From Ascidiella aspersa (Eukaryota): 64,000 nucleotides of DNA. Every line of letters starts with the position of its first letter. Positions within the stretch are counted from its first letter, which is position 1. The notes under the pieces were generated by a model. The model worked only from the letters and a program-made list of their open reading frames with translations, made no database searches and had not been told where the DNA came from. A program made the translations under genes and the position numbers. Positions 43,701-60,436 of the stretch are shown one piece after another. The stretch lies in contig OZ004614.1 of the NCBI GenBank assembly GCA_963924565.1, positions 7,626,001 to 7,690,000 on the forward strand, written 5' to 3'.

Positions 43701-46700
43701 CTAGTGTGAACCAGCCTTTACGATTGTGGTACACCCACCATAACTCTAATTCAGAAATATTAAATGAGTAAATGCAAAATAATAATAAAACTGAACTATA
43801 CAATGAAACATATGTACACACATATACGACTCGTTCCCTTCTGAGCCTGCATAGCTCAGTTGGTAAAGCGACGGTCCCGGCTTGACGGGAGGTCGTGAGT
43901 TCGAACCTCACTCCAGGCTAGTTGTTTTTCTAGTCTGCTCTGCTTGCATCATTGATCGACAGACTGGGTGAGTCTGCAATGGCTTTTCGGTGTACTAAAA
44001 CTGAACTATATAACAAAAAAAAATAAAATTTTTCAAAATCATTTGTTTATACTATGAATTGTGGCTTATTTTGTTAATATTAGGGTAGAAATAATTTAAG
44101 CAAAAAAATATTAGGGTAGAATAATTTAAGTCATTTTGGTGCCTCCTTTCCCTGTTTGCTTTAACGTGCTTATTTTGCTTAATGGTTGAGGCAGCCCTAC
44201 TAAATCAACTATAGACAACAAGTTAAAATTGGAATCGTTTGGTATTACAGTGTACAGAGCAACATTGCAATTGCAACTAAACCATAAACTAAATAGAAAA
44301 TACAAATATTAAGCGAGCATATATACCGATTGAAATCGTTTTGGAATTTTGGGTGCAGCGCAACATGGAAATTGCATCCTAACCCTAAATTTAGATTGAA
44401 CCGCCATAACTCAATTAACAATAAGCGGGAATATACTGACTGGAAATTGTTTGGTCTTACAGGTTGCGGTGCGAGCCAGGCAGAAAAGGACCTGATCAAC
44501 AAGCTGCTCACCAACTACGAGCCGATGGTGCGACCCGCCTCAAGCTACAAAGAAGTGGTCAACGTGACTTTCTCACTGACTCTGCAGCAGATCGTAGACT
44601 TGGTGAGCGTTTACCTAAAACTTGATTTAATCCAACCTTGAACCGAATCCATAGTGTTGAATAGGCACATCTTAATGCAATTTTGATCCGATTGTGTGTT
44701 TTTTGTCTATTATTGTCATAATAAGCCAATGAGCGCCGGAAAAACGGTAGAGTATAGCAGGGCTTCTTAAACTTTTTTAGTTTTGTTCACCCCATAGCAT
44801 CTCTCTCCAGATTTCATTCACCCTTGTCTCATGATATGATAAAACTATCTCGTCTGTAAATCACAGCACAAAATGACTTACAGTAGGTTGTTTCGATTTT
44901 TGTTAGCTTGAACAACTCAAGCTAAGTTTTACCATTGCAAATCTACAATTTCTCGAGTCCAGAGATATAAAGCTACAAAAGCACTAAACACAGTCGCAAA
45001 GTTTAGAAAAACAATGGACTATCATCCATTTTTGACGGTTCACCCTTATTCACCCCTTTTGGTTGGTTCACCCCTACAAAAATTGTATTAGCACAACGAC
45101 GTTACAAAGCGGAGGTCTACAAAAATATGTGACGTAACTTAACATAAAGCATACCGGCCTAACAGTCTTCTTCCAAAACGCCCCGCTTGTTTGAGTAACT
45201 TTCAAAATTGCTAATCCATGTTAAACTGCCAATCCAGGTGTACCTAGTGGTTGTTGTTGTTCTGAATTTAGGTTACTATCAGATTTCTATGTCCCCCCGT
45301 AAAGTTAAAAATAGTATAGCTGCAAGAAACATGTGTTCACGTCTAGTTTTAACTTACAGGATGAAAAGAACCAGCTTCTGACCACCAGCATGTACATGGG
45401 ATGGGTAAGTGCAGTTGTGCTTTCGCAACTATTTGCTTTACAAGAAAATAATTAGAAACTTCTGCTCTTGAAGCCTATATGTAAACCCTTGGAATAGCTG
45501 AGCGAAATCCTTGCTATACAGATAGCCGATTAACTGGAAACTATTACCATAACGTATAGTCGACATCATGGGCGCATTAAACGCGTGTTGCACGGTCTAA
45601 AACTATTTTTTTGACTGATTGTCCTACATAAATGCAAAAAAACTTTCGCTCGCCCGAAGCTCTACGTCTTTGTAGAACGTTTTCGTTGTTTTGTTAGAAT
45701 ATTTTAAGCAGAACTGCCATTTTTACTTAATTTAACACAAAAAATATTGACGTTACGTGACGTTGATTGTTTTATGCCTTGCACAATTTATTATTTCAAA
45801 TCATCTTGGTAAATGCATTAATATCGAGTAACTTGCGAATTTTGCTCGTGTGCTCAAAGCGCCACTCTCCATAAAATTTGATGTTTGGTAAATTGAAACA
45901 CTCTTTATTTGGTGTATGTTGACAAAATTAGGTTGTGTATTCGCGCAAGAGTTCGACCAAAAAAATTTCATAAAGTTACTTGTATCATGACGTCAAGCTA
46001 TATTACACATGTGCATAGTGTACCCAACTTCTATCGAGGTCCAGTAGATGTTGGTGATCTGAATGAAAACTTACTTACGTGTGTTGTAAATCGCTCTCCA
46101 ATTCCATCTAGCGGCAAGATTAAACCTCGATTAATTTTTTAAGGGTTGGAATGACACGTATATGCACTGGGTACCAGCAGACTACGGCGGAATCAAGAAC
46201 ATTCGGATTCCAGCCCAAAAGCTGTGGAAACCGGATATCCTGATCTATAACAGGTATGAAGGGGAAAATGTCGTATTTTTAAATGAAGAACAGTGAACGT
46301 GGCCGTAAGCTAAAAACCTAAATTTCATGAGTGACACAAAGCAGTAAATAAACTTCAAGGCGCGCATTAAAATAAAAAAATGTGCCTCGTACATCCTATG
46401 TTAGTCTCAAAATTATACTGGGCCTTGAAAAAGTCTTCTATATACGCGTTCAGTGTAAACAGCGATAGGAGCCCTTCATTCGGCTTCTTCCTGGGCATTA
46501 TCTTTTTTAATATTACTTAAATTAAAAAACTAATTCGTATAATATATAATTTCCCCCAATAGGGAATAACAAGGGTTTAAATTGCTGTACATAAAAATAT
46601 AATAGAGTTTGTGATAAGATAAGGTGTCAATATGTACATTGTCGTCAACATTGTGCAAACTTATATTAGTTTTATTTCCGCGGATATTAATTTTGATCAT

Positions 46701-49700
46701 TTTCGCGAATAATAATTTTTGATCCCTTGGCGCGAATAATTGGGGTCTTGTCATAGCCGGCGTCCGCCTTAAGTACGATTCCGCATTTCGATAATTTCGC
46801 TTATTTCGTTCATTTCGGCCGCAAATTGTCAGCTGAATTGCCGCGCGGCGGTTAATAATATACTGGCATCTAATCGACCTTTGGGAAGGCTGGTTTAATG
46901 GGAACAATTTGCACAAGCTAAACGGCCACTTAGGTTTGGCAGCCGTCCAAGGGACCGGAAACTAGAAGGGGAGAATATGCCTTGCGTTTCTTTTAGGGAT
47001 CTCCGACGCTTGGCATTTTTTCCGATACAGATGCCCGAATTTTTCTGCACAAAGTACCGAGATCCGATACCATATGACGGCATGAACACCCTGAAAGAAG
47101 CGAAATAGATAAAATTTAAACGGTCAGTAGTCTTTTTTCTCTGGTTATTGGGCCCAAAGTTGGTTTAGCGTTAGGTCGTCTATAGTTGGTAACCTGTTAT
47201 TTTATTGATAAAATCACCATTAAAAGTAGAATCGCTACGTTTAGATCAAAAACGACGACTGAAATTCCTATATTAATTTAGTATCGGAGCGGCACCGATA
47301 CAACTGTAGCATCGGTATCGTGTATCGGCTCCGATCCAATATTATCAGGCATTCCTAGGTTATTTTACTCGTTCTACCAATTGGCGGCATCACCACCCTA
47401 AAACCAGCAAAATATATAAAATTTAAAAGTTGAATAGCATTTTTTTCCAGGTCATTGATTTGGTTTAGCGTTAAATCGTCCCGTTGTTAACCTACAATTA
47501 TATGGATAAATTCACATGTCAAAGTGGAATACTATGGAAAATATTCCTATATCAATTTGGCATCGATAATAACACTTAGCGGCTCCGGTCCTATATTATG
47601 GGTCATTCCTAGGTTATAATACTCGTCCTGGCAAAGTTGACTTGGGATCAGCCCTTACCCACACCTACTTTCCACCGATCTATTATGCATAGCAGGCTCG
47701 GGAAAGAGTCAGTCGTTTCCGCCCACTTTGTCCAACTTTGCGGGTTCGTTCCGCTCCAAGTTGCCCAAACTCTTCGCCCTTAACACGCGTTCATGAAAGT
47801 TTAATTGGCGTTTTGCCGTGAAAAGGCGTGCCCCGAGCCGCCTGCATAATTCACAGCCGACCCCCCTTTAGTACACGCGTGAGTATAGGCGATAATAATG
47901 TGCGTAGAAAACTTTGGCCTTGGGATTTTTTTTGCTACTTTGCTGTCATTGTAACGGGTTTTCCGGTGAATCATATTGTGTGCTAAACTATTTACACAAA
48001 TGTGTGTACAACTGTGGGAGCTTTGAAAGGCGTACTGATAAACAATTCCGATGTTCATATATCAATAGTATTCTCGGAGATTTTTTAACCCCTGATAGAT
48101 TGACTGATTTAGGTTAGCCCATAGAATACTCATGGTCACCTAAATCAATTGTTTTTTCAGGCAAATGTCACAGAAAAAACGTCAGTCATTTAACATGTTT
48201 ATTTTGTTGCGTCTACCTCTGTTATTCCTGTCGTTTCTTGCATATTCTTTCTAAATCATTCAACATTTGACCTAGGTCGTTTAACCATCAGTAAAAAGTG
48301 TTTTCTGATTTGGTCTGGCCTACAGCAATTCCAAGACTATACCGTTTTTAAAACATTTTATTATACCCAATGCTCTTTCATTGCCAAAACACTCAACGAA
48401 AAAATTTGATTTCTAATTAGTTTATGATTCAGAATCATATACCACAATTACAATAAAAAAACAAAAAAATAATTTTTAAGCCTTTTTGCCATACCAAATG
48501 CCATCGTTCTGTGTCACTCCAAAAGAAAAAAACACTCCAAAAGAAAAACATGTTTTTAATTCATTTCTGGTTAGTTTATGATTCAGGAGCACATATTGCA
48601 CTTAGAGGAATCAGGTGACACTGTATTAAGACAAATTGTATTGAATTCTCGACAAGCCTTCGCACAACCGTGCTCCATCATTTCAAAGTACAAAACTGGT
48701 TAAATTGGCAAATGCGACCATTTACAAATATACTGCAATTACAATGCAAGAAAATCATACGATTTAACATAAAAACAAACGATGCTTCGCAGCGCTGTGG
48801 ACACGTTTGATCAGATGCTGCAAACCAACCTAATCGTCCACCACCACGGGCTGGTCGAATGGCTTCCTCCCGGTCTCTTCAAGACGACCTGTGACGTCGA
48901 CATAAAGTACTTTCCCTTCGACGAGCAGCGATGCCACATCAAGTTCGGCACCTGGACCTACCACGGCGGACTGGTGAGTGTGATTTTTAAGTGCAGGTTC
49001 ACAGGCACCTGTCTAGTTTAACCGGTCAGGAAAAACAGGACCACTTATTGACCCATTTTCAGTGGAAATGTCCGAAACTTGACATTTTCCGAATATTTTT
49101 TAGAATATTTTTACATTTTATTTCCGATACCGAATATAAATATTTTACATTTTATTTCCGATACCGAATTTTTTTACAATTTTTTTGTGTATATCTTGTT
49201 TCTATTCCGATATATTTTGCCAGTTAAAAGGCAACTATATATCTTGGTCACCGGTCATGAATACCGGACCGGCTATCCCTATGGCAATTAGTTCGCCTCT
49301 TATTGATCCTTTTTAAGTAGATATGTCTGATACTTGACACTTTAATCCGATACCTGTAATTGACATTTTGGACAAAAGCTGTCGCAATCCGATACCAAAT
49401 TACGTCATTGCTATGCATAGAACAATCGAAATAGATAAAAATGAAAAGTCAATTTTTCCTACTGATTAGGCCAAAAGTTGCTTTAACGTTAAGAAGTCTT
49501 GTTATCTCCAGTTGCTAGCCTACTTTTTGTTGTTAAAAAGATTGCCTTTTCAAATTAAGTATAATCCCCGCATTCATGGATGAAATCCTTGCATTGATTT
49601 GGTATCCTGTCGGCGCCGATACCACCGTAATATCGGATGAGTACCGATAATGCCACTTGGCATCTGGCATTGGCACCGATCCGATGTTATTGGATATCCC

Positions 49701-52700
49701 TAATTTTAAGTTTAAAAGCTATTTAGATTACCGGATATCGTTGTTCACCTGTTTTAGAATTGGGGAAATCTGTAGAAGGCTTGTTTCCGATAGTATAGCG
49801 TTTGTGCAAAATTTAGGTAACTGTGCTTTTCTGTCGGTTTTGATAGTCACGGGGACAAGGTAAAAATCGTAGCTTTAAGCGTAAGCGGCGATTTAGACAA
49901 GCCCTTTTGTTTAGAATGTTAAAAGACATGCTTAACTTCTCATATTGTGCTTATGTGCTTTTAGGTTGATCTGGTGGTAGCGCCTAACGCCGAAGCGGCC
50001 CTGGACAGCTACACTCCAAGTGGAGAATGGGACCTCCTTTGTAAGCATCTTGTGGTTTGCTATTTGAAATGCAATATGCAATACTTTTTTGTTGCTCTTT
50101 AGTATTTTTTTTCTCTTCTGTTCCATGCTTATACCAGTTAAATAACAATGTACTAACAGTGCGGTATAATGAAAACGCCAAAAAGTGTAACAAAAAGCCA
50201 GGAAAATATTTAAATGTGATTCATGCCATGACAAAAAATAAAAAAATTGCATCGCAAAGCACCAAAAGTTACTCGAGACAATATATCAAATGTGATCCAA
50301 AACCCTAAAGACAGATCTCACTTAAAAAGTAATTTAAATAATTATTTATTGTCACGTGTAACTTTTAAATGAAGTTCCGTTGAATTCTCCGTCGAAATAA
50401 CCGTGTAATATAGGTTTTCAGAGAAAAAGTGAACTAAAAATAAAATGTTGGGCCAGTAAACTACTAAATATCCTATTAGAGCCAAAAATTATGCCCTATT
50501 TAATGTGGCAAATATTCTTTAGACTTTCCTGTCTTAGTCAAAGTCAGTCATTAAGAAGTTCCAGTCCACATTAATAAATAGTAGTCCGCACTAAAACTTC
50601 TTATTGCGGACTAGAACCTGTTAATAAATAACTTTGACTAAAACAACCAAGTCTAAAGAATGTTTGCTGCCATTTGAATCCATTGTCGTGATATACGTGT
50701 AAGGGTTAGGAGATATCTTCATATTTTACACATCAGTTTGTCACTATTTAATGTGGTATGCGGTCAAAACAGTAAAACAGCCCCTTTTTCGCGCCACGTG
50801 TGCAGCGATGCGCGGCAAGCGGACGGCGGTGACGTACGAATGTTGCGATCACCCGTTCGTCGACGTCACCTTCACGGTTCACATGAGGAGGAGAACGCTC
50901 TTCTACGGATTCAACCTGATCCTTCCCTGCGTCCTCGTCTGCTCCCTTACCATCCTGGTCTTTCTCCTCCCGGCTGACTCCGGGGAGCGGATCACTCTGG
51001 GTGAGAGTCCTCTTTTGTTTTCTTTTTCTTTTTGGTTTGTTGCATCGCGGTGTTAGCTTTATTTTTGACACAACTCGATGCGGCTTGAAACATATGCTGT
51101 TGGTTCTGGTATTATAAGTGTTGTAATGACTTAAGTGAGTAAGTTGACTTAAGTGCACTTAAGTCACCTTTTTAAAATGACTTTACTTGACTTAAGTCTT
51201 TCGGACAAATGACTTGACTCGACTTTGACCTGGGTTAAAATTAAGCGTTTTCATTCAGAATTTTTTCAAAAATTGAGTTATTTATCTTAATTTGCGCATA
51301 TAAAACAATTTGCTTACTATATGTTGCATTTATATTATTTTTTACTTGAGTTATTGCTAACAATCGGACGAGTTTACCAATTTCATTAGTTTAAAGTTTT
51401 ATTTTCAAGACAAAAGGACTTGACTTGAAGTTGACTTGCTCTAATTAAGACTTGACTTGAACTAGTCTTGGGCAACCGATGACTTGGACTGGGGCTTGAG
51501 TTGTTATTTATTCGAAAACATACTTAACGGACTTAAATTAATTAATGAATGACTTGACTTGGACTTAAGTCATTTCAAAATGACTTGTTCACAGCACTGG
51601 GTATTACTATTACACTGTAGCGGTGGATCTTTCCCATAATAAGTCGTGTCAGAGAATTTTACTAGGTTTGTGTCCAATTTTGAAGAAAGACCCCTCAAAA
51701 TCGATCTCAATAAATTAAACCACGTGGACTACTGCACTCATCAGCGACCCAGCCAATAAAATGGCATCCCAAAAAACACTGGTATAACATAACCGAAAAA
51801 ACGTTTACCAATAAAATCATTAAATAAACGACACTGTATGATGTTTTTTTTAGTGCATGTGTATTCAGATCGGACTCGCGGATTTCCTGGATATACTGTG
51901 CTATACTCTCCACGTGTGACTTGCATTATTGATACATATCTTGTTGCTTGTACAAGCGAACTACACGCTTTCGCCCTCGACCACTTAGCGCCTTAGCGAG
52001 TTCAAACCGGGCGGACACGAATTATCCGCATGTGTCGCTGGCGCGCTACATTTAAAATAAGGGACTAAAAATATGTACCGGATGGTGTCGCTAAAGATTT
52101 TTTTTTAATTTTCAACCGTTTTTCTTGGTGCCTTTCAACCTGTTGTCGTATTCGTGAGATTTAAGCTTTTAAACGTGAATAATTTCGTTTACTATAGGAC
52201 ATAAAAAGTAAATGGCAATCTGAAATATGATGTCTGACTACATTATGGTGATTTGTTGTTATTGCGAATACAACCCTTTAACACGATCGGGTGCGAAAAA
52301 AAACTACTCCGTTCATACTGAAGGTCTGAAAAATCCACCGTTTTTGGCACGTATATCCAAATGACAAAAACGCCGATTTTGGGTTGTTGGCCAAGAAATA
52401 AAGCCTGCGTTTTAACTCTTCTCATCCATAATGACAATAAGCAATGATAGTTCTGTAAAATGCATATTTAAACTTAGCGACGGGGTTTTAGGTTGTGGTA
52501 AATCTTAATTCTTTGTTCAAAATCTTAATTTCCTTATTCTTTTAGAAAATGGTACTGAAATACATATTGGCCGAAATCACTGTGTGTTGCATTATTTCAA
52601 ATTTGGAGAGCTGTATACTTATGTTATGTATAGCATATCTTATGTCCCAATTCATTTCAAAAGAAAAGCCCCGATTTTAGACAATATCCTCTTCTGTCCA

Positions 52701-55700
52701 TTTGCCTCCCAAGCTGTCATTGAATGAGATAGATGAGACAATCAATTTAGAATAAGCTTACAAAATATTCTACACTGCATTTGAGTCCTTCAACCCAGTT
52801 TAAAAATACTTATGTAGAGCTAACCTATTTCGCCCCCATACACAGGCATCACGGTGCTTCTCGCCTTGGTCGTCTTCCTACAACTTGTCGCCGACAACCT
52901 GCCTCCGACTGACGTCATACCTTTGCTCGGTAGGGTGCTCCGCTGTGATTGTTCGCTCACGAATGGGCGGGGCCGGATAAAAATTTGGGCGAAAACCGCA
53001 CAAATGAGGTTTACGCTGGCGGTAGTGAGCGTTTTTTTTTATCCGGGCCTGTACCTTTCCGAGGCTTTTAGTCCTGGTAAATGGCTGTCTTTAATTTCGG
53101 GGAATGCTGCATGTTCCATAGTCTTGGTGTTTATTAACAAATTAACTTAATGTGGCTTCTGTGGTGTTGTGTTCTTTTGAAATTTTGTTTTTGTTTTTCT
53201 GTTTGCATTGAAAACCATATGTATTCTGGGCAAGTGAAACAGTTACAATAAGAAACAAGCATTTAAACCTCGCCGTTTGTCAGTCAAAAATCCAGGTATT
53301 CATTTCGATGAAAGCAAAGTTATTGAGTAAGCATAAATGTAACATAAAAATATCATACCAATTTGTTACAAACTTCTTGTCATTTTTGTTCTTAAGTCAC
53401 TGCTTTTTAAAAAATTATTAGTCTTTTAGGCAAAATGGGTAACTAAAGTCTATCAGACAAAAGACTTGACCTGGACTTAAGTCATTAGGACAAACGACCT
53501 GACAAAGTTGGGTCTTTTCATTCAATTAGTGGTAAAATTTGGTTAGTTTTACTTCAGTATCTGCTCGTAAAACTATTTGCTCTCTATACAGGTGTTTCGT
53601 TTCTGTTATTTGTGAATCAAAACTTTCTGTTTGGTAAATTATCATTTTATTTTGATGCAAATGAATTGTCTTGCTATGGACTAGAACTTGACTTACCATT
53701 TTGATACAAATGACCTGACTTGAACTAAACTTAATTTGCAAATGACCTGACTAGGACTAAACTTAATTTGCAAATGACCTAACTAGGACTAAACTTAATT
53801 TGCAAATGACCTGACTAGGACTAAACTTAATTTGCAAATGACCTGACTAGGACTAAACTTAATTTGCAAATGACCTGACTAGGACTAAACTTAATTTACA
53901 AATGACCCGACTAGGACTCGAGAGTCATTTCAAAATGACTTGGTTACAACGCTGGAAGGTAGCACTTAAGGCGTGGCCTTTGGAGTACCGGCATGTAGTC
54001 AGTCGCCCAACTGTCTTCCGAGCATACAACCCTTGAAACCGGTCACAGTTTCAACACAGAAGCACTGGTAACCTGTGTACATCGTCTTTCCTCCGAACAG
54101 GTATAACCCTCGTGCTGGCGATCGTTGTCTTTATGGGTCCCGTTGTTGAAGTGATACCCCATTCCACTGTGGAGTCCCTCGTCTGTAAGCAAACGAGTGT
54201 AACGGGGTTTTCTGCTAACCGCAGCTGATATCTGGCTTTAATCAGTGATTTTTGCCGGGTCGAGATGCCTTGGTACGTTTTAACAGAACAGTCGGTTGCG
54301 ACGCCGTACTTCGAAAGCTTGTGTTTGAAATACTGACACACTGACATCGCAGACTTGTCGTATTTTTAGTGTTGCAACAACATGCTAGGTTTGGCTTTCA
54401 AGGACTATCAAAGCCGTTGCAGAAACTGGTCAATTTGTGCAAACGTTTCGAATATATTATTCACGAACGTTAGACGATTTACTTCGAACGTTTACACAAT
54501 ATTAACTTATTTGTGTATACTGCTGTGAATGTTCCTTCTATATATTAAACTTTCTTACTAAAATAAACTAAAATTAACAAAGCTAGGATGAATCTCGGTA
54601 TATTTTGGTTCGTTAGACATTCTTGTGATATGAGGTGATGATAGTAATAAACCTTAAATGTCATTTAGTTTTAAATAACTGCTTTTCCCTACTATCCACC
54701 AGTAATAGCATTTACACTATATGTCGCTATATTACCAACAAGCGTTATACTGTAAAAAATAAACTGCCTATTGATCAATATAAAGAGCGTTGTTTTAAAC
54801 TAACCTTAGAACCAAAGCATTTCAAAACAACCCAGGCACTGTATATTTTAGATGCAACCTTAAAATCAGCCAAGTTGCAATTGCCTTATTTAAACCCAGA
54901 TTGAAAGTATACTGAAGTCTAAAAATAACCTCAAATATAACCAGAAATATTTGTTTGTATAAAAAAATATATCATTTCTGCTTTGTGATTTACTAACAAT
55001 TGTCCAAAATCTAACTCGTTGTTAACAGACAGTTTTATTTAGTTTATTCACATTAACTGAAGATGATAGAAGCTCTTATCGAAACGTGTTAACCAAGATT
55101 ATTTTGATCTACTCGACCTTTTTGGCTTTGCAATTTATTATCAAGCTACATTACAGATCGTGAATAGTGTACCCAAGTTTTATTTACCATTGGGGGTATC
55201 GTATGTTGCATGTTGCGTTGCATGGTGTTGCCATTTTATTTGAAAAAAAAAATGTCGTCTTGACGGTCTTCTGCATGCGTTGTACACACGGAGTGTGTAT
55301 GAAATCTCTTTTTTCTGCCCATTAATCGAATTGCGTTGGCGTCCAGGCAAGTACTTCGCGTGCAGCATAGTCATGGTGACGTCATCGGTCATATGCACGG
55401 TGATTTCCCTTAACTTTCACCACACGACGTCGGCGACCACCAACGAGATGCCTGCATCGGTAAGTGACGCTTGGCGGGGCGTTTGTTTAAAGAAGTGGGG
55501 TTATCTTAATTCTTAACTGTTACGGCGAAACGCCGCATCCGTATATTGTGAAACAAAGTTAATTGCAGAAAATCTTACTCGGTCGTGTCTATTCTAATAA
55601 CAAGTGCTTTGCAACCAAGTAAATCGTTTTATTGCACATAACTGAGTTATTCCTGTTAATGACGTTTAGTTAACCGTAATTCTCATGTAGGTTCTCATAC

Positions 55701-58700
55701 AGTAATTCTATAATTCTATTGGTAATTTTTACATATTCTACGAGCCATATCATTGAAAGAACAACAACAGGTCTACCTGTGCGCGAAAAGGCACTCGGAA
55801 CAGATAATAAGCGAAAAGATATACATTGGAATAGTTTAAGATGTTAGAAAATGTTCAAAGAATGTGCATCTCTTTAACCAGTTAAAAAATAAATTTATTT
55901 TGAACGCAAAGTTTTAGGCTGGATTTATTACAGTATTTTAGTTTTTTTAGGCTTTATAAATTTTAATCATTTGTCAACACGTGTGATTGAAATCCACCAA
56001 ACACGTGTGATTGAAAATCCATTCAATTTATGCGTAGAAACAATAAATGAATCACGAAGGCTTCTGATCGGACTTTGATATTAATTCTAAGTAGTCTGAA
56101 GAAAATGCTAAATAAATTACTCATGTAAACAGTGTGAAAAACAATTTAAGGGTTAAAAAATGCATTGCGCTTTGCAAATTAAATTATTCTTGTCAACAAC
56201 CTTCAATTTTTTTTTCAAAGAAACAGGATTGCAGCGCGGAAACAAATCGCTTTTTCCCCAATTTGACTACAGCGTTTTTTTGACATAACACCGAAAACGA
56301 GCTTTTCATAGGCGATCAAGTTCGTCCGAATACTATTTTATGTTACGTGTAGATTCGTCTGATCTTTCTCGAATGGCTTCCAAAGTTGCTCCGTATGAAG
56401 AGGCCAGGGGAGAACAGCTTTAGACGAAAGTTCCTGGACGGAACCGAGCCGGAACTTCTGGCTGGAAATGGGGCAGAAACACCCCTGATCAGGGCACGTA
56501 TATCAAATGTCTGCTATATTGTTTACCGACACAGAAATGTTTAATATCCAAAACTTTGCTTACAATTTACACTTTGGACCACAATGGTAAGAGGTTTTAG
56601 TTAGACGAAGTAGAAATATCAAAGTCCATAAAGAATTATAGGTAACTTTTTTAACGTTTCGAATATGTCTTTATTCAGTTTCGACTTCAACATCTAAATT
56701 TAGTTTTGGCAAATTTAAATTTAGATTTTGGATTGCTGCTAAATTGAGCAGGAGGCATTGCTGTAAACGTCTGGGGGTAATTTTTTTTTTATAAAAATGT
56801 AAGTCGCCTGTAGTTAACGATTTGCCATGTTGTGAAAAGTGATAAGTCGTTTGAGTTACTTATCATCTCGGCATAGAATTAAATCGAGTTTATTGTGTGC
56901 ATTACTTTGACTTTCTTTTCGAATTTCACAGATCGGCGATCGGCTGGCTAACAAAGGAAACGACTGCACCACAAATCTGTGCGACGCTAACCAGTAAGTT
57001 CAAATTAAAGCACACCAACACACCTTAAAATATGAGGTTGTCTAAAATAGTTTAGCACATGGCGTTACTTAAAACAGTTGGCACTTAGTTACAGTTGCAC
57101 TACTGGCATGAAATCAAGGTGAAGGATGTAGCCTAATGGTTTGGGATTTTTATTTTGATGGGCCAAGGGTAAAAAATATAAAATGAATAATAAAAACTTG
57201 GGCACAACACCTTTCTATGTAGTTATCGAATTAAATATTTTGCTGTGCTGTTTAACCTCGGGACATTGGTTGTTTCATAAAGGTTCCAGGTGCGCCGAAG
57301 GCAAAAAAAAGATCAAATTCTCAAAAATAAAACCTATTTTTATTATTTACTTTCTCCTTTGCCTTAGCTCATTGAGCATACTACAGCACTTTCAAGATAA
57401 TGCAATCATGAGACCGTACAAAAAACTTTCAATAAATAAATAAATAAAAACTTGCAATAAACGTAATTTATTTGCTAACTGTTTTGGCTTAGGTCATTAT
57501 ACAATACAGTCATGATAAAGTTACCATGAGACCCACGTAAGAAAAAACTTGCAAGAAATTAAAGGTGAATACTGGTATACAGAACATATTTTCTGCTTGC
57601 TCTATATCAGGGGTTCTTAACCTTTTTTGTATGTTTCACCCTCTGAACAAAAATGAATATCAAATTTACCCCCAATATATAAAGTGGTGCTCATTTATTA
57701 AAAAAACGAAAGTAACAAATTACATCAGTTATAGTCAGTGTGACGGCTTCCTTTGCTTTTTGGCAACGAGTTAAATTGCAATATCTGGGAAATTAGTGAT
57801 AATGCACAACGAATTTAAGATTTAACATGAAGTCGGTTTCGTGCTTTATATTTAATAGTTAGTAATGCAGAGAAGCCGCTTCGCAAAAGTTAGTTAAAGA
57901 AAATGGAACAAAAAATATACATATCCTTGGATTTACCCCCTAGAACGAGTAAATTTACCCCCTGGGATAAATTTACCCCAGGTTAAGAAAGCTGCTCTAT
58001 ATAGTTGCGTCCTGAGGTAAATGGGTAACGAAACACCGCACTATCGTATAATATCTAAATCTCAAACATCAACAACCATTTTCGCAATAAAAACTGATGT
58101 TTTTATTTTGGCATCACGTCTCTCAAACTGGCGTCAAAAAATAGTTCTAACAAATAAAACTCGAAATACAGTTGCTCACAAGGGAATGGCGGGCGGCTTA
58201 ACATGTCTTTAAAATCACATGTGTTTATATCAGGAATGGGCAACCTACGGCTCGCGGGACAGATTTGGCCCGCCAACGCAAATCATGCAGTCCGCGGCCT
58301 ATTTAACAAACTGGGCACGAGGCCATTCCTGATATTTATTTGGCTGTTTTAACTACCGGTACCTAAAATCTTTTTTTCCGCTTTGCAAATCTTGTTCCTC
58401 CATCGGGTGTAAATTACAATTTACAAAATATACTATAGTTTTAACCCTGATTAACAGTCGTTGCGGTTGTTATAACAAGATGCGTAAAGTATACACATTT
58501 AAATTAAACCAACCCGAAGTGACCTCTCTAAGTTTGGTTTCGGCCCGCGACTAGAAAAAATGTTGCCCACCCCTGGTTTATACTGTAATGTGGTTGATCA
58601 GGGAAATGAACAAGATCCTTGAGGGGCTGACTTTCATCACCCAGCGAATGCACAATGACGATGAAGATGAAAAGAGCGCCCTCGAGTGGAGATTTGCCGC

Positions 58701-60436
58701 CACAGTCTTGGACAGGTGAGGCAATCCGCTCGGGCCGTTTAGGGTGCTTATTATTGCACTAAGAATAATTTGATGAATAAAAACAGCCTGCTGTGAGTGA
58801 AGTGTTAAACGCAGGGCTGCGGAGTCGGGTGAAATTACCCCGAGTCCGACTCCAGCCAAAAAAATAAACCCGAATCCGAGTCCCAAGTCCGACTCCAGTC
58901 AAACGTGCGCTATTTCGTCGAGTCCCGAGTCCGGTTCTGACTCTACAAACTGTATTCCGTACTAAATTCGGTATATTCAACAACCCATTTAAAAAGAGGT
59001 GTAATACAACTCATCTACTCGCAATACATGGTGTGAAAATATCCACCATATGCTATTACGCCTTGTACAATTTACAGTTGGCGGTCATATCAGTTTCAAA
59101 ATTTAGTACTGCGCGTGCTCACGTCTAAATTTCTTTGGTAGTTTTACGTGGTCTCACTCGAGTCCCGAGTCCAACTCCGACTCCACAGCCGTGGTTATAC
59201 GCATTGTATATATATTTTCGCAAGGTTGTAAGTTCATTGCCCTGACGAAGATTGCCTCAACAGATCATCCAAACGTTGGCACATTTGGGAAAAAATATTT
59301 GTCGGACAAACAATACAATGCCTGGCAACAATAACAGTATAATCACTCGTTTAAGTTATAAGCATTAAATGCGTTTTTGATAAAAATAAATGTAACATAC
59401 TTTCTCATGTTTGTACAACTGCGATAAATGAGTCGTAAAACTTAGCACCAAAGATGCCTGAAGCCAGATTGGTATACTAGTTTTTGTCCTAAGCCTATTT
59501 AACAGGAAATATCAACAGTGAAAAAACCCGTATAAAATATTGGCCTTAGAGTTGACGCTTTCTCGAGATACATCTGGTTGTTTTGGAGCAGTGGTTCTCA
59601 AACTTTTTTGCTTGCGACACACTAAAAATTCTGAAACATTTTACGGCACACTTTTAACAGAACAACAATAGAGTCATTTTACAATCGCCCTTAAAACACG
59701 ACAAACTATATGTAGGCCTATATGTATCAATATTAATAATTTGTAATGGATAGTGCGTAGTTAAGTCTTAAATGCTTGCGTGTATGCCCATTGGAAATAC
59801 AAATAACTTATTTTTCTAAATTACAAAAAGTTTCGCGGCAAACTTAACAATCTCTCGAGGCACACTATTGTGCCGCGGCAGACAGTTTGGGAATCACTGC
59901 TTTGGAGTATTGCGTTCGAATCTTGTTCCCAGTTGGAATTGCTTTGAAACATACGCTATCGACAAAACCACGGTTGCATTCATTAAAGCTTTCTCAACAT
60001 ATGAAGTCCGGAACTTCATTAGTGAAAATTACACGTGTTACCGATGCCTTTCAAATATTTGTCAACAAGTTCTACCTGTGTTGTAAACAAGTCATTTTTT
60101 TCTTTATTTTTACCCCAGTCATTCGTCCACAAGACTTAAATCAAGTCAATTCATTTGTTCAAAAGACTTAAGGCAACTCAAGCCATTTTCCTCAAAAGAA
60201 TTAAGTCAAGTCATTTGAAAACAGTGAGTTAAGTTAAATCATTGACTTAAGTCATTACAACACTGGATCTTACCTGTTCAAAATATTCTAACCCTAAAAT
60301 AAAATACGTGTAAGACTAACGGATCGAGAACTGCAATCCCAGGTTCTGCGTCTGGTTCTTCGTCATCTACTTCGTGGTGTCTACCATGTTCACACTTGGA
60401 CTCGCCCCGGGAATCCTACTGCCCTACCAGAGCTAG
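31708..60436 (+). CDS. CHRNA7: Nicotinic acetylcholine receptor alpha subunit, alpha7-like (about 472 aa, 13 coding exons)
   Basis: join(31708..31771,44463..44602,45360..45404,46144..46253,48793..48973,49965..50040,50806..51000,52846..52929,55347..55459,56353..56493,56932..56993,58602..58715,60343..60436) = 1419 nt in frame. Contains a signal peptide, Cys-loop [15 protein letters not shown], vicinal YECC (alpha subunit), M1-M4 and LPADSGE. Exon sizes 140/45/110/195 match vertebrate alpha7. Exact orthology is not provable by eye. Confidence 0.9.
32339..32584. mobile_element. hAT MITE family B, copy 1
   Basis: CAGTGCTTCTTA...TAAGAAACACTG; TSD GTGTACAG/GTATACAG; homologous to 44758 and 63714. 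Confidence 0.85.
32593..33230 (+). mobile_element. Decayed hAT (Buster/Charlie-like) element
   Basis: TIR-like CATGGGTTCTCAAACTGGGG directly after the previous TSD. Traces of hAT dimerisation-domain-like peptides (LSYATTW, LRLAI). Boundaries uncertain. Confidence 0.35.
33500..33800 (-). mobile_element. Possible decayed L2/Crack-like LINE fragment
   Basis: Frameshifted peptides loosely resemble the Y...L.YC...W...IR.I...HTNP.. pattern; weak. Confidence 0.25.
37719..38035. mobile_element. hAT MITE
   Basis: Perfect TIR CAGGGGTTCTTAAAC; perfect TSD GTTTATTG. Confidence 0.9.
39010..39240 (+). mobile_element. Possible decayed LINE (CR1/Jockey-like) ORF2 3' fragment
   Basis: AMYSSLI..PHLK..IRR and IPTLS..KRKLLFL loosely resemble the post-RT region of CR1-group LINEs. 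Confidence 0.3.
40912..41151. mobile_element. hAT MITE
   Basis: CAGTGGTTC...GAACCACTG; perfect TSD CTTTAGAC. Confidence 0.88.
41937..42207. mobile_element. hAT MITE (diverged)
   Basis: CAGGGTTTCTTAACC...GGTTTAAAACCTCTG; subterminal GGGGTGCG. Confidence 0.65.
43503..43717. mobile_element. PIF/Harbinger-type MITE
   Basis: Perfect TIR of more than 20 bp, AGGCTGGTTCACACTAGACGCG; TTA TSD on both sides; central palindrome AAGTTGAAATATTTCAACTT. Confidence 0.88.
43801..43995 (+). mobile_element. tRNA-derived SINE-like element / pseudo-tRNA
   Basis: A box TAGCTCAGTTGG and B box GTTCGAACC in a tRNA-like fold (43844-43919) with an aberrant anticodon arm. Flanked by the 15-bp direct repeat TAAAACTGAACTATA. 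Confidence 0.7.
44463..44602 (+). CDS. CHRNA7: nAChR exon 2
   Basis: [24 protein letters not shown]...[13 protein letters not shown]; 140 nt, AG/GT bounded. Confidence 0.92.
44758..45085. mobile_element. hAT MITE family B, copy 2 (right end truncated)
   Basis: High identity to 32339-32540. Confidence 0.75.
45360..45404 (+). CDS. CHRNA7: nAChR exon 3 (loop D)
   Basis: [15 protein letters not shown]; 45 nt; CAG| and |GTAAGT boundaries. Confidence 0.92.
46144..46253 (+). CDS. CHRNA7: nAChR exon 4 (loop A)
   Basis: [36 protein letters not shown]; 110 nt. Confidence 0.93.
48793..48973 (+). CDS. CHRNA7: nAChR exon 5 (loop E, Cys-loop, loop B)
   Basis: AVDTFD...[38 protein letters not shown]; donor |GTGAGT. 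Confidence 0.95.
49320..49701. repeat. CCGATAC-motif MITE remnant (related copies at about 47020-47360 and 47410-47610)
   Basis: Shared blocks CGAAATAGATAAAA, GGCCAAAAGTT and CCGATAC, and a GATATCCCTA-like end. Confidence 0.55.
49965..50040 (+). CDS. CHRNA7: nAChR exon 6 (loop F)
   Basis: [25 protein letters not shown]; TTTTAG| and |GTAAGC boundaries. Confidence 0.9.
50502..50674. repeat. Imperfect palindrome (MITE-like) in nAChR intron 6
   Basis: Nested pairs GGCAAATATTCTTTAGACTT/AAGTCTAAAGAATGTTTGCT, TAGTCAAAGT/ACTTTGACTA and TAGTCCGCA/TGCGGACTA. Confidence 0.65.
50806..51000 (+). CDS. CHRNA7: nAChR exon 7 (loop C, M1, start of M2)
   Basis: [22 protein letters not shown]...[15 protein letters not shown]...[12 protein letters not shown]; 195 nt. 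Confidence 0.95.
51116..51599. mobile_element. hAT MITE with GACTT subterminal repeats
   Basis: TSD GGTATTAT/GGTATTAC; many GACTT units. Related fragments near 30985-31130, 53390-53955, 60085-60265 and 62400-62700. Confidence 0.8.
52846..52929 (+). CDS. CHRNA7: nAChR exon 8a (M2 and M2-M3 loop)
   Basis: [28 protein letters not shown]; 84 nt, phase 1-1. Confidence 0.92.
53707..53918. repeat. 32-bp tandem repeat, about 6.6 copies, inside a GACTT-family MITE
   Basis: CAAATGACCTGACTAGGACTAAACTTAATTTG at 53707, 53739, 53771, 53803, 53835, 53867 and partially at 53899. Confidence 0.95.
54101..54184 (+). CDS. CHRNA7: nAChR alternative exon 8b (duplicated M2 exon, probably mutually exclusive with 8a)
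   Basis: CTTTCCTCCGAACAG| and |GTAAGC boundaries; 84 nt, phase 1-1, no stop. [28 protein letters not shown] aligns without gaps to exon 8a. Confidence 0.75.
54680..55175 (+). mobile_element. Decayed Penelope-like 3' fragment (GIY-YIG remnant plus pLTR with hammerhead)
   Basis: TSNSIYTIC...DQ..ERCFK resembles GIY-YIG N-terminal motifs (weak, frameshifted). It is followed by the hammerhead and the terminus shared with the 21304 element. Confidence 0.45.
55052..55093 (+). ncRNA. Minimal hammerhead motif, intact core boxes but GUG triplet
   Basis: TTAA-CTGAAGA-T-GATAG-AAGCTC-TTATC-GAAA-CGTG-TTAA. Confidence 0.65.
55347..55459 (+). CDS. CHRNA7: nAChR exon 9 (M3)
   Basis: [25 protein letters not shown]...EMPAS; donor |GTAAGT. 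Confidence 0.93.
56353..56493 (+). CDS. CHRNA7: nAChR exon 10 (MX helix, intracellular loop)
   Basis: [19 protein letters not shown]...; the 3' boundary is inferred from a GC donor, AGG|GCACGT. Confidence 0.8.
56932..56993 (+). CDS. CHRNA7: nAChR exon 11 (intracellular loop)
   Basis: TTTCACAG| [20 protein letters not shown] |GTAAGT; its phase-2 end fits exon 12. Confidence 0.65.
57608..57994. mobile_element. hAT MITE
   Basis: CAGGGGTTCTTAACC...GGTTAAGAAAGCTG; perfect TSD CTCTATAT. Confidence 0.85.
58231..58575. mobile_element. hAT MITE
   Basis: CAGGAATGGGCAAC...GTTGCCCACCCCTG; TSD GTTTATAT/GTTTATAC. Confidence 0.82.
58602..58715 (+). CDS. CHRNA7: nAChR exon 12 (MA helix)
   Basis: [38 protein letters not shown]; donor |GTGAGG. 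Confidence 0.9.
58812..59193. mobile_element. hAT MITE with GAGTC/GACTC repeats
   Basis: CAGGGCTGCGGAGTCGG...CCGACTCCACAGCCGTG; TSD GTTAAACG/GTTATACG. Confidence 0.8.
59238..59281 (+). ncRNA. Minimal hammerhead motif, degenerate (CAAA for GAAA)
   Basis: TGCC-CTGACGA-A-GAT...ATC-CAAA-CGTT-GGCA. Confidence 0.5.
59589..59899. mobile_element. hAT MITE family A, copy 3
   Basis: TIRs as above; TSD TTTTGGAG/CTTTGGAG. Confidence 0.85.
60343..60436 (+). CDS. CHRNA7: nAChR exon 13 (M4, stop)
   Basis: [30 protein letters not shown]; TAG at 60434-60436. Confidence 0.9.

Follow-up and report, generated by a model that had tools for sequence, protein, structure and literature searches.

A candidate alternative pore exon, shared with Ciona, in an alpha7-like nicotinic receptor gene of the ascidian Ascidiella aspersa

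Nicotinic receptors of the alpha7 type have been studied intensively for their fast desensitization and high Ca2+ permeability, both of which are set by the pore-lining second transmembrane helix (M2) and the linker that joins it to the third (the M2–M3 linker). In the vertebrate gene, CHRNA7, this segment lies in one M2 exon, about 87 nucleotides (nt) long. Within alpha7, the residues E237 (-1'), L254 (16'), and L255 (17') control Ca2+ permeability, for example through the substitutions L255R/T/G, and L247, V251, L254, and L255 shape desensitization (PMC4959957, citing Bertrand 1993, Revah 1991, Corringer 1999). The proline of the M2–M3 linker, alphaPro272, serves as an anchor between the beta1–beta2 and Cys loops that couples binding to gating; its substitution by Ala or Ser shifts the coupling energies among the anchor residues, other family members have Lys or Thr in its place, and the Pro-to-Ser mutants of the muscle acetylcholine receptor (AChR) remained analysable at the single-channel level (PMC2483337). 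Insect alpha6 carries mutually exclusive versions of the M2 exon, termed 8a, 8b, and 8c (PMC6393475). Among tunicates, a Ciona alpha7-related receptor, possibly the product of another gene, is reported in the citing passages of two later articles to mediate ciliary arrest in the gill slits (Jokura 2020, as cited in PMC13596531, PMC11273300). Here, we describe an alpha7-like subunit gene in a 64,000-nt stretch of the genome of the ascidian Ascidiella aspersa (GenBank assembly GCA_963924565.1, contig OZ004614.1, positions 7,626,001 to 7,690,000 of the forward strand; hereafter, the window), in which two tandem exons, 8a and 8b, offer alternative versions of M2 and its linker, the second of them highly atypical.

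The composition of the window is that of AT-rich eukaryotic DNA, and a multi-exon Cys-loop receptor subunit gene extends along its plus strand from about 44.4 to 60.4 kb (Table 1). Homology searches, which were run exon by exon, place the Pfam families PF02931 (Neur_chan_LBD) on exons 4 and 5 and PF02932 (Neur_chan_memb) on exons 7, 9, and 11. The Cys-loop (C-x13-C) is encoded by exon 5, and the vicinal cysteine pair of loop C (TYECC), which is a mark of alpha-type subunits, by exon 7, at the end of which lies the cation-type selectivity filter Gly-2'/Glu-1' that is common to the 8a and 8b isoforms. Judged by these sequence marks, the gene is that of a pentameric ligand-gated ion channel (pLGIC) and encodes a nicotinic alpha7-like subunit. 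It resembles vertebrate CHRNA7 in its gene layout, in the -1' Glu, in T6', L9', V13', E/D20', and P23', and in the vicinal cysteines of loop C, and the peptide of exon 8a aligns with vertebrate alpha7 structures over 28 residues.

Exon 8b begins with GT ATA ACC CTC and ends with TCC CTC GTC T; its reading frame is open throughout the 84 nt, an AG acceptor stands at 54099–54100, and GTAAGC follows directly after 54184. Counted from R0' in exon 7, the exon with its neighbours is read as G4'-I-T6'-L-V-L9'-A-I-V-V13'-F-M15'-G16'-P17'-V-V-E20'-V-I-P23'-H-S-T-V-E-S-L-V-C. A sequence-only reading of the window had proposed the exon at 54101–54184 with T6', L9', V13', M15', G16', P17', and E20' and with this loop end, and the sequence, the splice sites, and the neighbouring exons match the proposal exactly. 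Exons 8a and 8b form an adjacent homologous pair in which both members are 84 nt long, are in phase 1 at entry and exit, and have their own AG/GT sites; the first bases of exon 9 (GC) complete a Gly codon after 8a and a Cys codon after 8b. The exchange of 8b for 8a covers residues 5' to 32', i.e., the pore helix in its upper two thirds and the entire M2–M3 linker, and the ligand-binding domain, M1, the G-2' E-1' R0' filter, M3, and M4 are shared by both forms.

In a tblastn comparison within the window, the sole other match of 8a is 8b, and reciprocally (E 0.001, 12/28 identical). Over the 29 residues, 12 are identical and 17 differ. The nucleotides agree at 37 of the 84 sites (14/27, 20/27, and 2/27 by codon position), and an identical codon is used at one of the 12 positions with the same residue. 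Since synonymous sites are randomized and second positions are kept, the two exons probably arose by an old duplication and have both been under protein-level selection; this codon-position pattern indicates a history unlike that of a relic drifting in an intron. The 8b sequence is single-copy in the 308.6-Mb assembly. The readable M2 exons of the paralogues in this genome all have hydrophobic residues at 16'/17', their readable linkers all read ..PLI or ..PIL, and no paralogue has Pro17' or is devoid of the linker proline. The capture of 8b from a paralogue was considered and rejected, since no paralogue M2 resembles 8b and the exon was thus apparently not copied from another gene.

The exon 7 peptide was searched against 1.84 billion protein representatives and gave 4130 matches, the closest full-length one being the alpha-7-like protein P0012 (73% identical) from the ascidian Clavelina lepadiformis. 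With P0012 as the query, three JGI transcripts and sequences of Ciona intestinalis (the alpha-7-like isoforms), Styela clava, and Clavelina (a paralogue) were retrieved, and the next matches were arthropod alpha6/alpha7 and vertebrate alpha7. Sequence similarity thus identifies tunicate alpha7-type subunits as the closest relatives of the gene, and by exon identity the gene in the window is nearer to Ciona than to Clavelina. The Ciona orthologue is annotated as ‘neuronal acetylcholine receptor subunit alpha-7-like’ (NP_001265890.1/BAJ65320.1, RefSeq isoforms X1–X8); the matched exons show about 75% identity, and the two tandem M2 exons are present there as well. Its proteins fall into four classes, namely those with 8a only (P0271, P0274, P0276, P0281, and the cloned complementary DNA (cDNA) NP_001265890.1/BAJ65320.1), with 8b only (P0272 = XP_026689343.2, P0273 = XP_078481715.1, P0277 = XP_026696733.1, P0282 = XP_026689343.1), with 8a and 8b in tandem (P0152, P0275, P0278, P0279), and with neither exon (P0154–P0156). 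The 8b-only isoforms were modelled in two RefSeq annotation releases, and to our knowledge the NCBI pipeline reports alternative isoforms only with transcript or RNA sequencing (RNA-seq) support.

The Ciona 8b peptide, GITLVLSLLVFMVPIVEVIPHSPITSSVC, is identical to that of the window at 20 of 29 residues (69%), and the two 8a peptides agree at 29 of 29. The gene's other exons are 60, 62, 66, 75, 77, 77, 85–89, 89, 100, and 100% identical to those of Ciona, a range within which the 69% of 8b falls. Moreover, 13 of the 17 residues that are specific to 8b in the window are the same in Ciona (L7', V8', M15', P17', V19', E20', V21', I22', H24', S25', S29', V31', and C32'), and six of these, P17', V19', E20', H24', S29', and C32', link the exon to the 8b-only models, e.g., XP_026689343.2; the Ciona peptide differs in having Val for Gly at 16', Pro for Thr at 26', and Ser for Leu at 30'. 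Because these 8b residues are common to both species, the duplication should be older than their split, with the character of 8b maintained since. Taken together, these comparisons leave little doubt that 8b is a conserved alternative exon and neither a product of chance nor junk.

The extent to which 8b departs from its family was assessed in an alignment of 60 nicotinic subunits, alpha7-like ones and their relatives, with the 8b isoform of Ciona. The exon keeps T6', L9', V13', the acidic residue at 20', and P23' of the canonical nicotinic M2 and linker, P23' being present in 60/60 relatives. At 16', the relatives have Leu (29), Asn (11), Gln (9), Ser (6), Ile (1), or His (1), and the Gly of the window occurs in none of the 60, the Ciona residue being Val. 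Position 17' is occupied by Leu (35), Met (10), Ile (9), Thr (3), Val (2), or Gln (1), so that a Leu, Met, or Ile stands there in 54 relatives; 8b has Pro in place of this large hydrophobic residue, and Pro is found in none of them. Within the linker, 26' is Asp or Glu in 49/60 (Thr in the window, Pro in Ciona), 29', the equivalent of alphaPro272, is Pro in 59/60 (Ser in both species), and 32' is Gly in 50/60 (Cys in both species). Across all 282 fetched proteins, Pro17' is confined to the Ciona 8b isoforms. A sequence search of the PDB matched the 8a peptide to 75 distinct pLGIC chains, as against one chain for the 8b peptide, that of alpha7, over residues 1–23 only (E 3.4). Vertebrate alpha7 differs from 8b in having L16' L17' and a linker reading ..DSVPLI, in contrast to G16' P17' and ..TVESLV-C, apart from its single M2 exon. 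A Gly at 17' is known from glycine receptor alpha1.

The sequence-only reading had described 8b as highly atypical and as having lost the M2–M3 loop proline, and both descriptions are borne out by the relatives and by the Ser29' of the two ascidians. Its statement that substitutions at 16'/17' alter the Ca2+ permeability and desensitization of alpha7 agrees with the literature (PMC4959957, citing Bertrand 1993, Revah 1991), as does, for the linker proline, the coupling of binding to gating by the M2–M3 loop (PMC2483337). The Gly-Pro signature that it emphasized stands in part, since P17' is conserved in Ciona 8b and G16' is not, the pair being Val-Pro in that species; the conserved hallmarks of 8b are therefore P17', S29', and C32', and G16' is particular to the window species. 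Ser29' occurs in one of the 60 relatives, that of Limulus, and the alpha7-like subunits of Tachypleus and Dermatophagoides likewise read ..AVSI[IV]G. These chelicerate subunits (P0177, P0170, and P0171, from Limulus, Tachypleus, and Dermatophagoides) have Ser for the linker proline (..AVSIIG/..SVSIVG) together with LQ or MQ at 16'/17', and because Ser29' is the only form seen in them, loss of the linker proline need not disable gating.

Natural Ciona isoforms were used as proxies for folding, and AlphaFold monomers were computed for the 8b-only (P0272) and the 8a-only (P0274) form, each with the same 60 homologues. The mean predicted local distance difference test (pLDDT) scores were 87.5 and 87.6, respectively, and M2 formed one continuous helix (267–289) by DSSP in both models. 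Over residues 281–300, the pLDDT was 89/84 for 8b and 89/87 for 8a. AlphaFold is insensitive to substitutions of this sort. The models say only that 8b fits the canonical fold, and they neither support nor exclude a proline kink. The suggestion that a Gly-Pro pair breaks the helix thus finds no support, given the Val-Pro of Ciona and the continuous M2 predicted with equal confidence for the two forms.

We propose that the M2 exon of the tunicate alpha7-like nicotinic receptor gene was duplicated in tandem long ago and that 8b, which arose in this way and has been conserved since, is spliced in place of 8a in the smaller share of transcripts, perhaps those of certain cells. Subunits containing 8b, alone or mixed with 8a in a pentamer, may still form cation channels; a cation channel with the usual gate is to be expected because 8b retains T6', L9', V13', E20', and P23' and has the -1' Glu in common with 8a. 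In such channels, the upper hydrophobic girdle (16'/17') would be modified, as would the coupling of the binding domain to the pore (S29', C32', and the absence of an acidic residue at 26'), and since girdle and coupling linker would both be changed, kinetics different from those of 8a and probably a lower Ca2+ permeability are expected. That the minor 8b isoform builds working channels or takes part in them, with changed kinetics of activation and desensitization and probably a lower Ca2+ permeability, has in our judgment an even chance of being correct. A bolder version, which we put forward tentatively as somewhat unlikely, would be that ascidians keep a switchable pore-and-coupling cassette (P17', S29', C32', no acidic 26') that yields a qualitatively different channel with the same binding domain for cell-type-specific use; such a channel would, for example, desensitize slowly or not at all or have a low Ca2+ permeability, and its use would differ, for instance, between neurons and the ciliated cells of the gill slits.

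Another possibility, to be taken seriously although we consider it improbable, is that 8b is real and conserved but encodes a subunit that does not conduct alone, acting as a regulatory or dominant-negative partner that would reduce or reshape the currents of pentamers shared with 8a, or being retained in the endoplasmic reticulum, on account of Pro17', the added Cys, and the loss of the linker proline. Human dupalpha7/CHRFAM7A, a dominant-negative partner of alpha7, provides a precedent. The breaks at near-invariant positions (17', 29', 32') would be in keeping with such a subunit, but the gate and ring residues T6', L9', V13', E20', and P23' are all kept, and the chelicerate receptors have Ser29' as their only form. 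Similarly, the imbalance of 1 to 75 in PDB chains and the lack of any Pfam domain match for the 8b open frame, together with the minor or undetected place of 8b in RNA described below, favour a non-conducting product, against which stand the same AlphaFold fold and confidence for both Ciona isoforms and the muscle AChR Pro272Ser mutants, which were still amenable to single-channel analysis (PMC2483337).

The use of 8b in the species was approached through an index search with its 84-nt sequence, which returned two runs: run X1, consisting of Logan contigs from 2023 whose kind is not on record, and run X2, raw-read RNA-seq from 2026 under the same species label. Both were mapped on positions 50650–56600 of the window (5951 letters), about 6% of X2 being read, which gives a depth of about 1x on the gene. 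Since the introns are empty in X1 apart from repeats, this run behaves as RNA. Its contigs contain GT..AG joints from 51000 to 52846 (exon 7 to 8a, depth 87), from 52929 to 55347 (8a to 9, depth 75), and from 55459 to 56353 (9 to 10), and two reads of X2 support the joint from 51000 to 52846. Exon 8a is thus the main form in the RNA of the species. Two of four sampled 31-mers of 8b are contained in the X1 index, which is at odds with the fact that no X1 contig is placed on 8b; a filter in the mapping may have removed the record.

Several observations weigh against a functional 8b isoform as proposed above. The depth over 54033–54231 is zero in both runs, the only joints seen being 7 to 8a to 9 to 10. 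The annotations of Clavelina and Styela carry M2 of the 8a type only. The exon diverges faster than 8a (69% against 100% identity to Ciona), and the pore-lining position 16' is not constant between the two species. The Ciona 8b isoforms are computational models, the cloned cDNA being of the 8a form only. Searches of protein cluster representatives and of JGI metagenome contigs brought to light no further sequence resembling 8b: a word search with the 63-residue 8b open frame returned no fragment of 35–110 residues; a search with the Ciona 8b region (P0272, 264–308) returned the Ciona cluster only, by a method to which isoforms inside 90% clusters are invisible; and back-translated 8b patterns gave 63 pattern matches in the JGI contigs, of which 0 were confirmed. 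Finally, double inclusion and double skipping of the two exons stay in frame and are modelled in Ciona, so that mutual exclusion may not be strict.

From the zero depth, the 8a-only joints, the lower conservation, the G16' peculiar to the window species, and the missing Pfam match, it might be argued that 8b is an unused or decaying duplicate (a pseudo-exon) in this species, that its inclusion is splicing noise, and that its likeness to Ciona reflects past selection. We regard this as quite unlikely. The open frame, the strong splice sites on both sides, and the length and phase are intact, and the 13 of 17 specific residues have been kept although most other exons of the gene are 60–89% identical to those of Ciona. 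The raw-read run, with about 6% of its reads and a depth of about 1x, is without power, and contigs drop rare variants, so the empty interval over 8b does not show the exon to be silent; the X1 index does contain two of the four 8b words. That 8b is a chance intronic open frame resembling a transmembrane helix, as the abundance of hydrophobic stretches and the weak 8a–8b match within the window alone (E 0.001) might suggest, was rejected on the homologous 8b of Ciona intestinalis proteins, which lies in the same place in the protein models with 20/29 identity, and has virtually no likelihood left, considering also that its boundaries, phase, and length are identical to those of 8a and that it is unique in the genome.

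If 8b is an alternative exon, the manner of its choice is a separate matter. In the species, transcripts running from 7 through 8a to 9 are seen and, at low power, none with 8b, and Ciona has models with 8a only, 8b only, both, or neither. Since the two exons add 84 + 84 nt in frame, nonsense-mediated decay would not act against double inclusion, and as the intron between 8a and 8b is 1171 nt long, a steric block is not expected either. Models with both exons or with none are also present in arthropod annotations, and they may therefore be by-products of annotation. An inverted-repeat scan for docking and selector pairing yielded mostly parts of a repeated intronic element. Two inverted-repeat pairs, I16 (14 nt, 86%) and I6 (18 nt, 83%), between 52569–52601 and 54243–54341 bracket the 8a–8b pair, with arms about 245–275 nt upstream of 8a and 60–155 nt downstream of 8b; their pairing in the pre-mRNA would loop out both exons.

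The comparison with arthropods is instructive in both directions. Arthropod alpha6/alpha7-like genes likewise have alternative versions of the M2 pore exon in an alpha7-related subunit (PMC6393475). In the alpha7-like proteins of Macrobrachium, the alternative part, with at least four versions, lies after ..GEKLSL and before TYFNC, i.e., over the same span as 8a/8b, and their annotation resembles that of Ciona in including models with both versions and with neither (P0163, P0211, P0198). The arthropod variants seen, however, all have a hydrophobic 17' (Leu or Met), and the insect and crustacean ones keep the linker proline and the final Gly, whereas the tunicate 8b departs from 8a at 17 of 29 residues, near-invariant ones included. 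The tunicate and arthropod duplications of the M2 exon are probably independent. Mutually exclusive M2 exons are thus already known in arthropods, and the tunicate 8a/8b pair is already contained in Ciona RefSeq in the form of automatic models; in the literature, no publication describing the Ciona 8b form or the tunicate pair was found.

At least two ascidian lineages keep an alternative cassette for the M2/linker segment, which breaks two near-invariant rules, the hydrophobic 17' and the linker proline, with the gate residues preserved. If 8b is expressed and functional, it would supply a ready set of substitutions that nature already tolerates and against which models of gating coupling could be tested, and the pore-exon switching of alpha7-like genes known in arthropods would extend to chordates. 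The switchable cassette, if true, would amount to an experiment of nature on the part that the M2–M3 linker and upper M2 play in setting alpha7 gating. If 8b is silent or inert, it would be an ordinary duplicated exon that is carried along.

Table 1. Exons of the alpha7-like subunit gene (positions in the window)
Feature	Position	Strand	Content and remarks
Exon 2 (approximate, tblastn range)	44462..44602	+	N-terminal ligand-binding domain; 62% identity to Ciona P0152 residues 24-70
Exon 3, 45 nt	45360..45404	+	15/15 residues as in Ciona
Exon 4 (approximate)	46147..46251	+	Neur_chan_LBD, E 2e-11
Exon 5 (approximate)	48791..48982	+	Cys-loop; Neur_chan_LBD, E 4e-19; 77% identity to Ciona
Exon 6 (approximate)	49965..50039	+	Exon-wise comparison with Ciona
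Exon 7, 195 nt	50806..51000	+	Loop C with YECC, M1, start of M2 (G-2', E-1', R0'); donor GTGAGA
Exon 8a, 84 nt	52846..52929	+	Canonical M2 and M2-M3 linker; acceptor ..CATACACAG, donor GTAGGG; form seen in RNA
Exon 8b, 84 nt	54101..54184	+	Candidate alternative M2 and M2-M3 linker; acceptor ..CTTTCCTCCGAACAG, donor GTAAGC
Exon 9, 113 nt	55347..55459	+	M3; begins GC AAG TAC
Exon 10	56353..56497	+	Start of intracellular loop; end uncertain: 56493 with a GC donor, as in the contig of run X1, or 56497 with a GT donor
Exon 11 (approximate)	58600..58716	+	MA helix; Pfam PF02932, Ciona comparison
Exon 12 (approximate)	60341..60424	+	M4; Ciona comparison

The boundaries of some of these exons are marked by the X1 contigs. 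Exon 7 ends with ..GAG CGG ATC ACT CTG G at 51000, and the X1 contig begins at 50806. At the end of exon 10, the contig departs from the genome after 56493, implying a GC donor (AGG followed by GCACGT), and 4 nt downstream, at 56498, there is a GT donor. The Ciona isoforms differ by two residues at the corresponding point (PLMV-AGERLG and PLMVVR-AGERLG), which suggests alternative donors there. In exon 9, two G>A differences set the X1 contig apart from the assembly, one at 55399 and one at 55459, the latter being the last base of the exon (TCG>TCA, synonymous); these differences suggest that X1 comes from another individual or haplotype.

Two peculiarities were noted among related proteins. 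At position 20', in the extracellular ring, the Clavelina orthologue has Gln in one assembly (P0012, CAK8683324.1) and Glu in another (P0151, XP_076818560.1); this difference in charge, at a site relevant to permeation, is either a polymorphism or an error. In addition, the database proteins P0001–P0007 and P0009 contain the equivalent of exon 7 (loop C and M1) twice in tandem, probably as gene models that read through duplicated or mutually exclusive copies of exon 7 in other animals.

The introns around the alternative exons contain repeats. About 180 nt upstream of 8b, at positions 53800–53920, a 32-nt unit (TTGCAAATGACCTGACTAGGACTAAACTTAAT) is repeated in tandem about four times, and in the interval 53834–54032 the contigs of X1 reach a depth of 213, while exon 8b has none. 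Furthermore, 51048–51644 and 55028–55226 are intronic repeats with GACTTAAGTCA-like fold-back motifs, where the depth in X1 rises to about 2700 and where variant letters and loose ends are numerous in both runs; these repeats look like a transcribed family of multi-copy elements.

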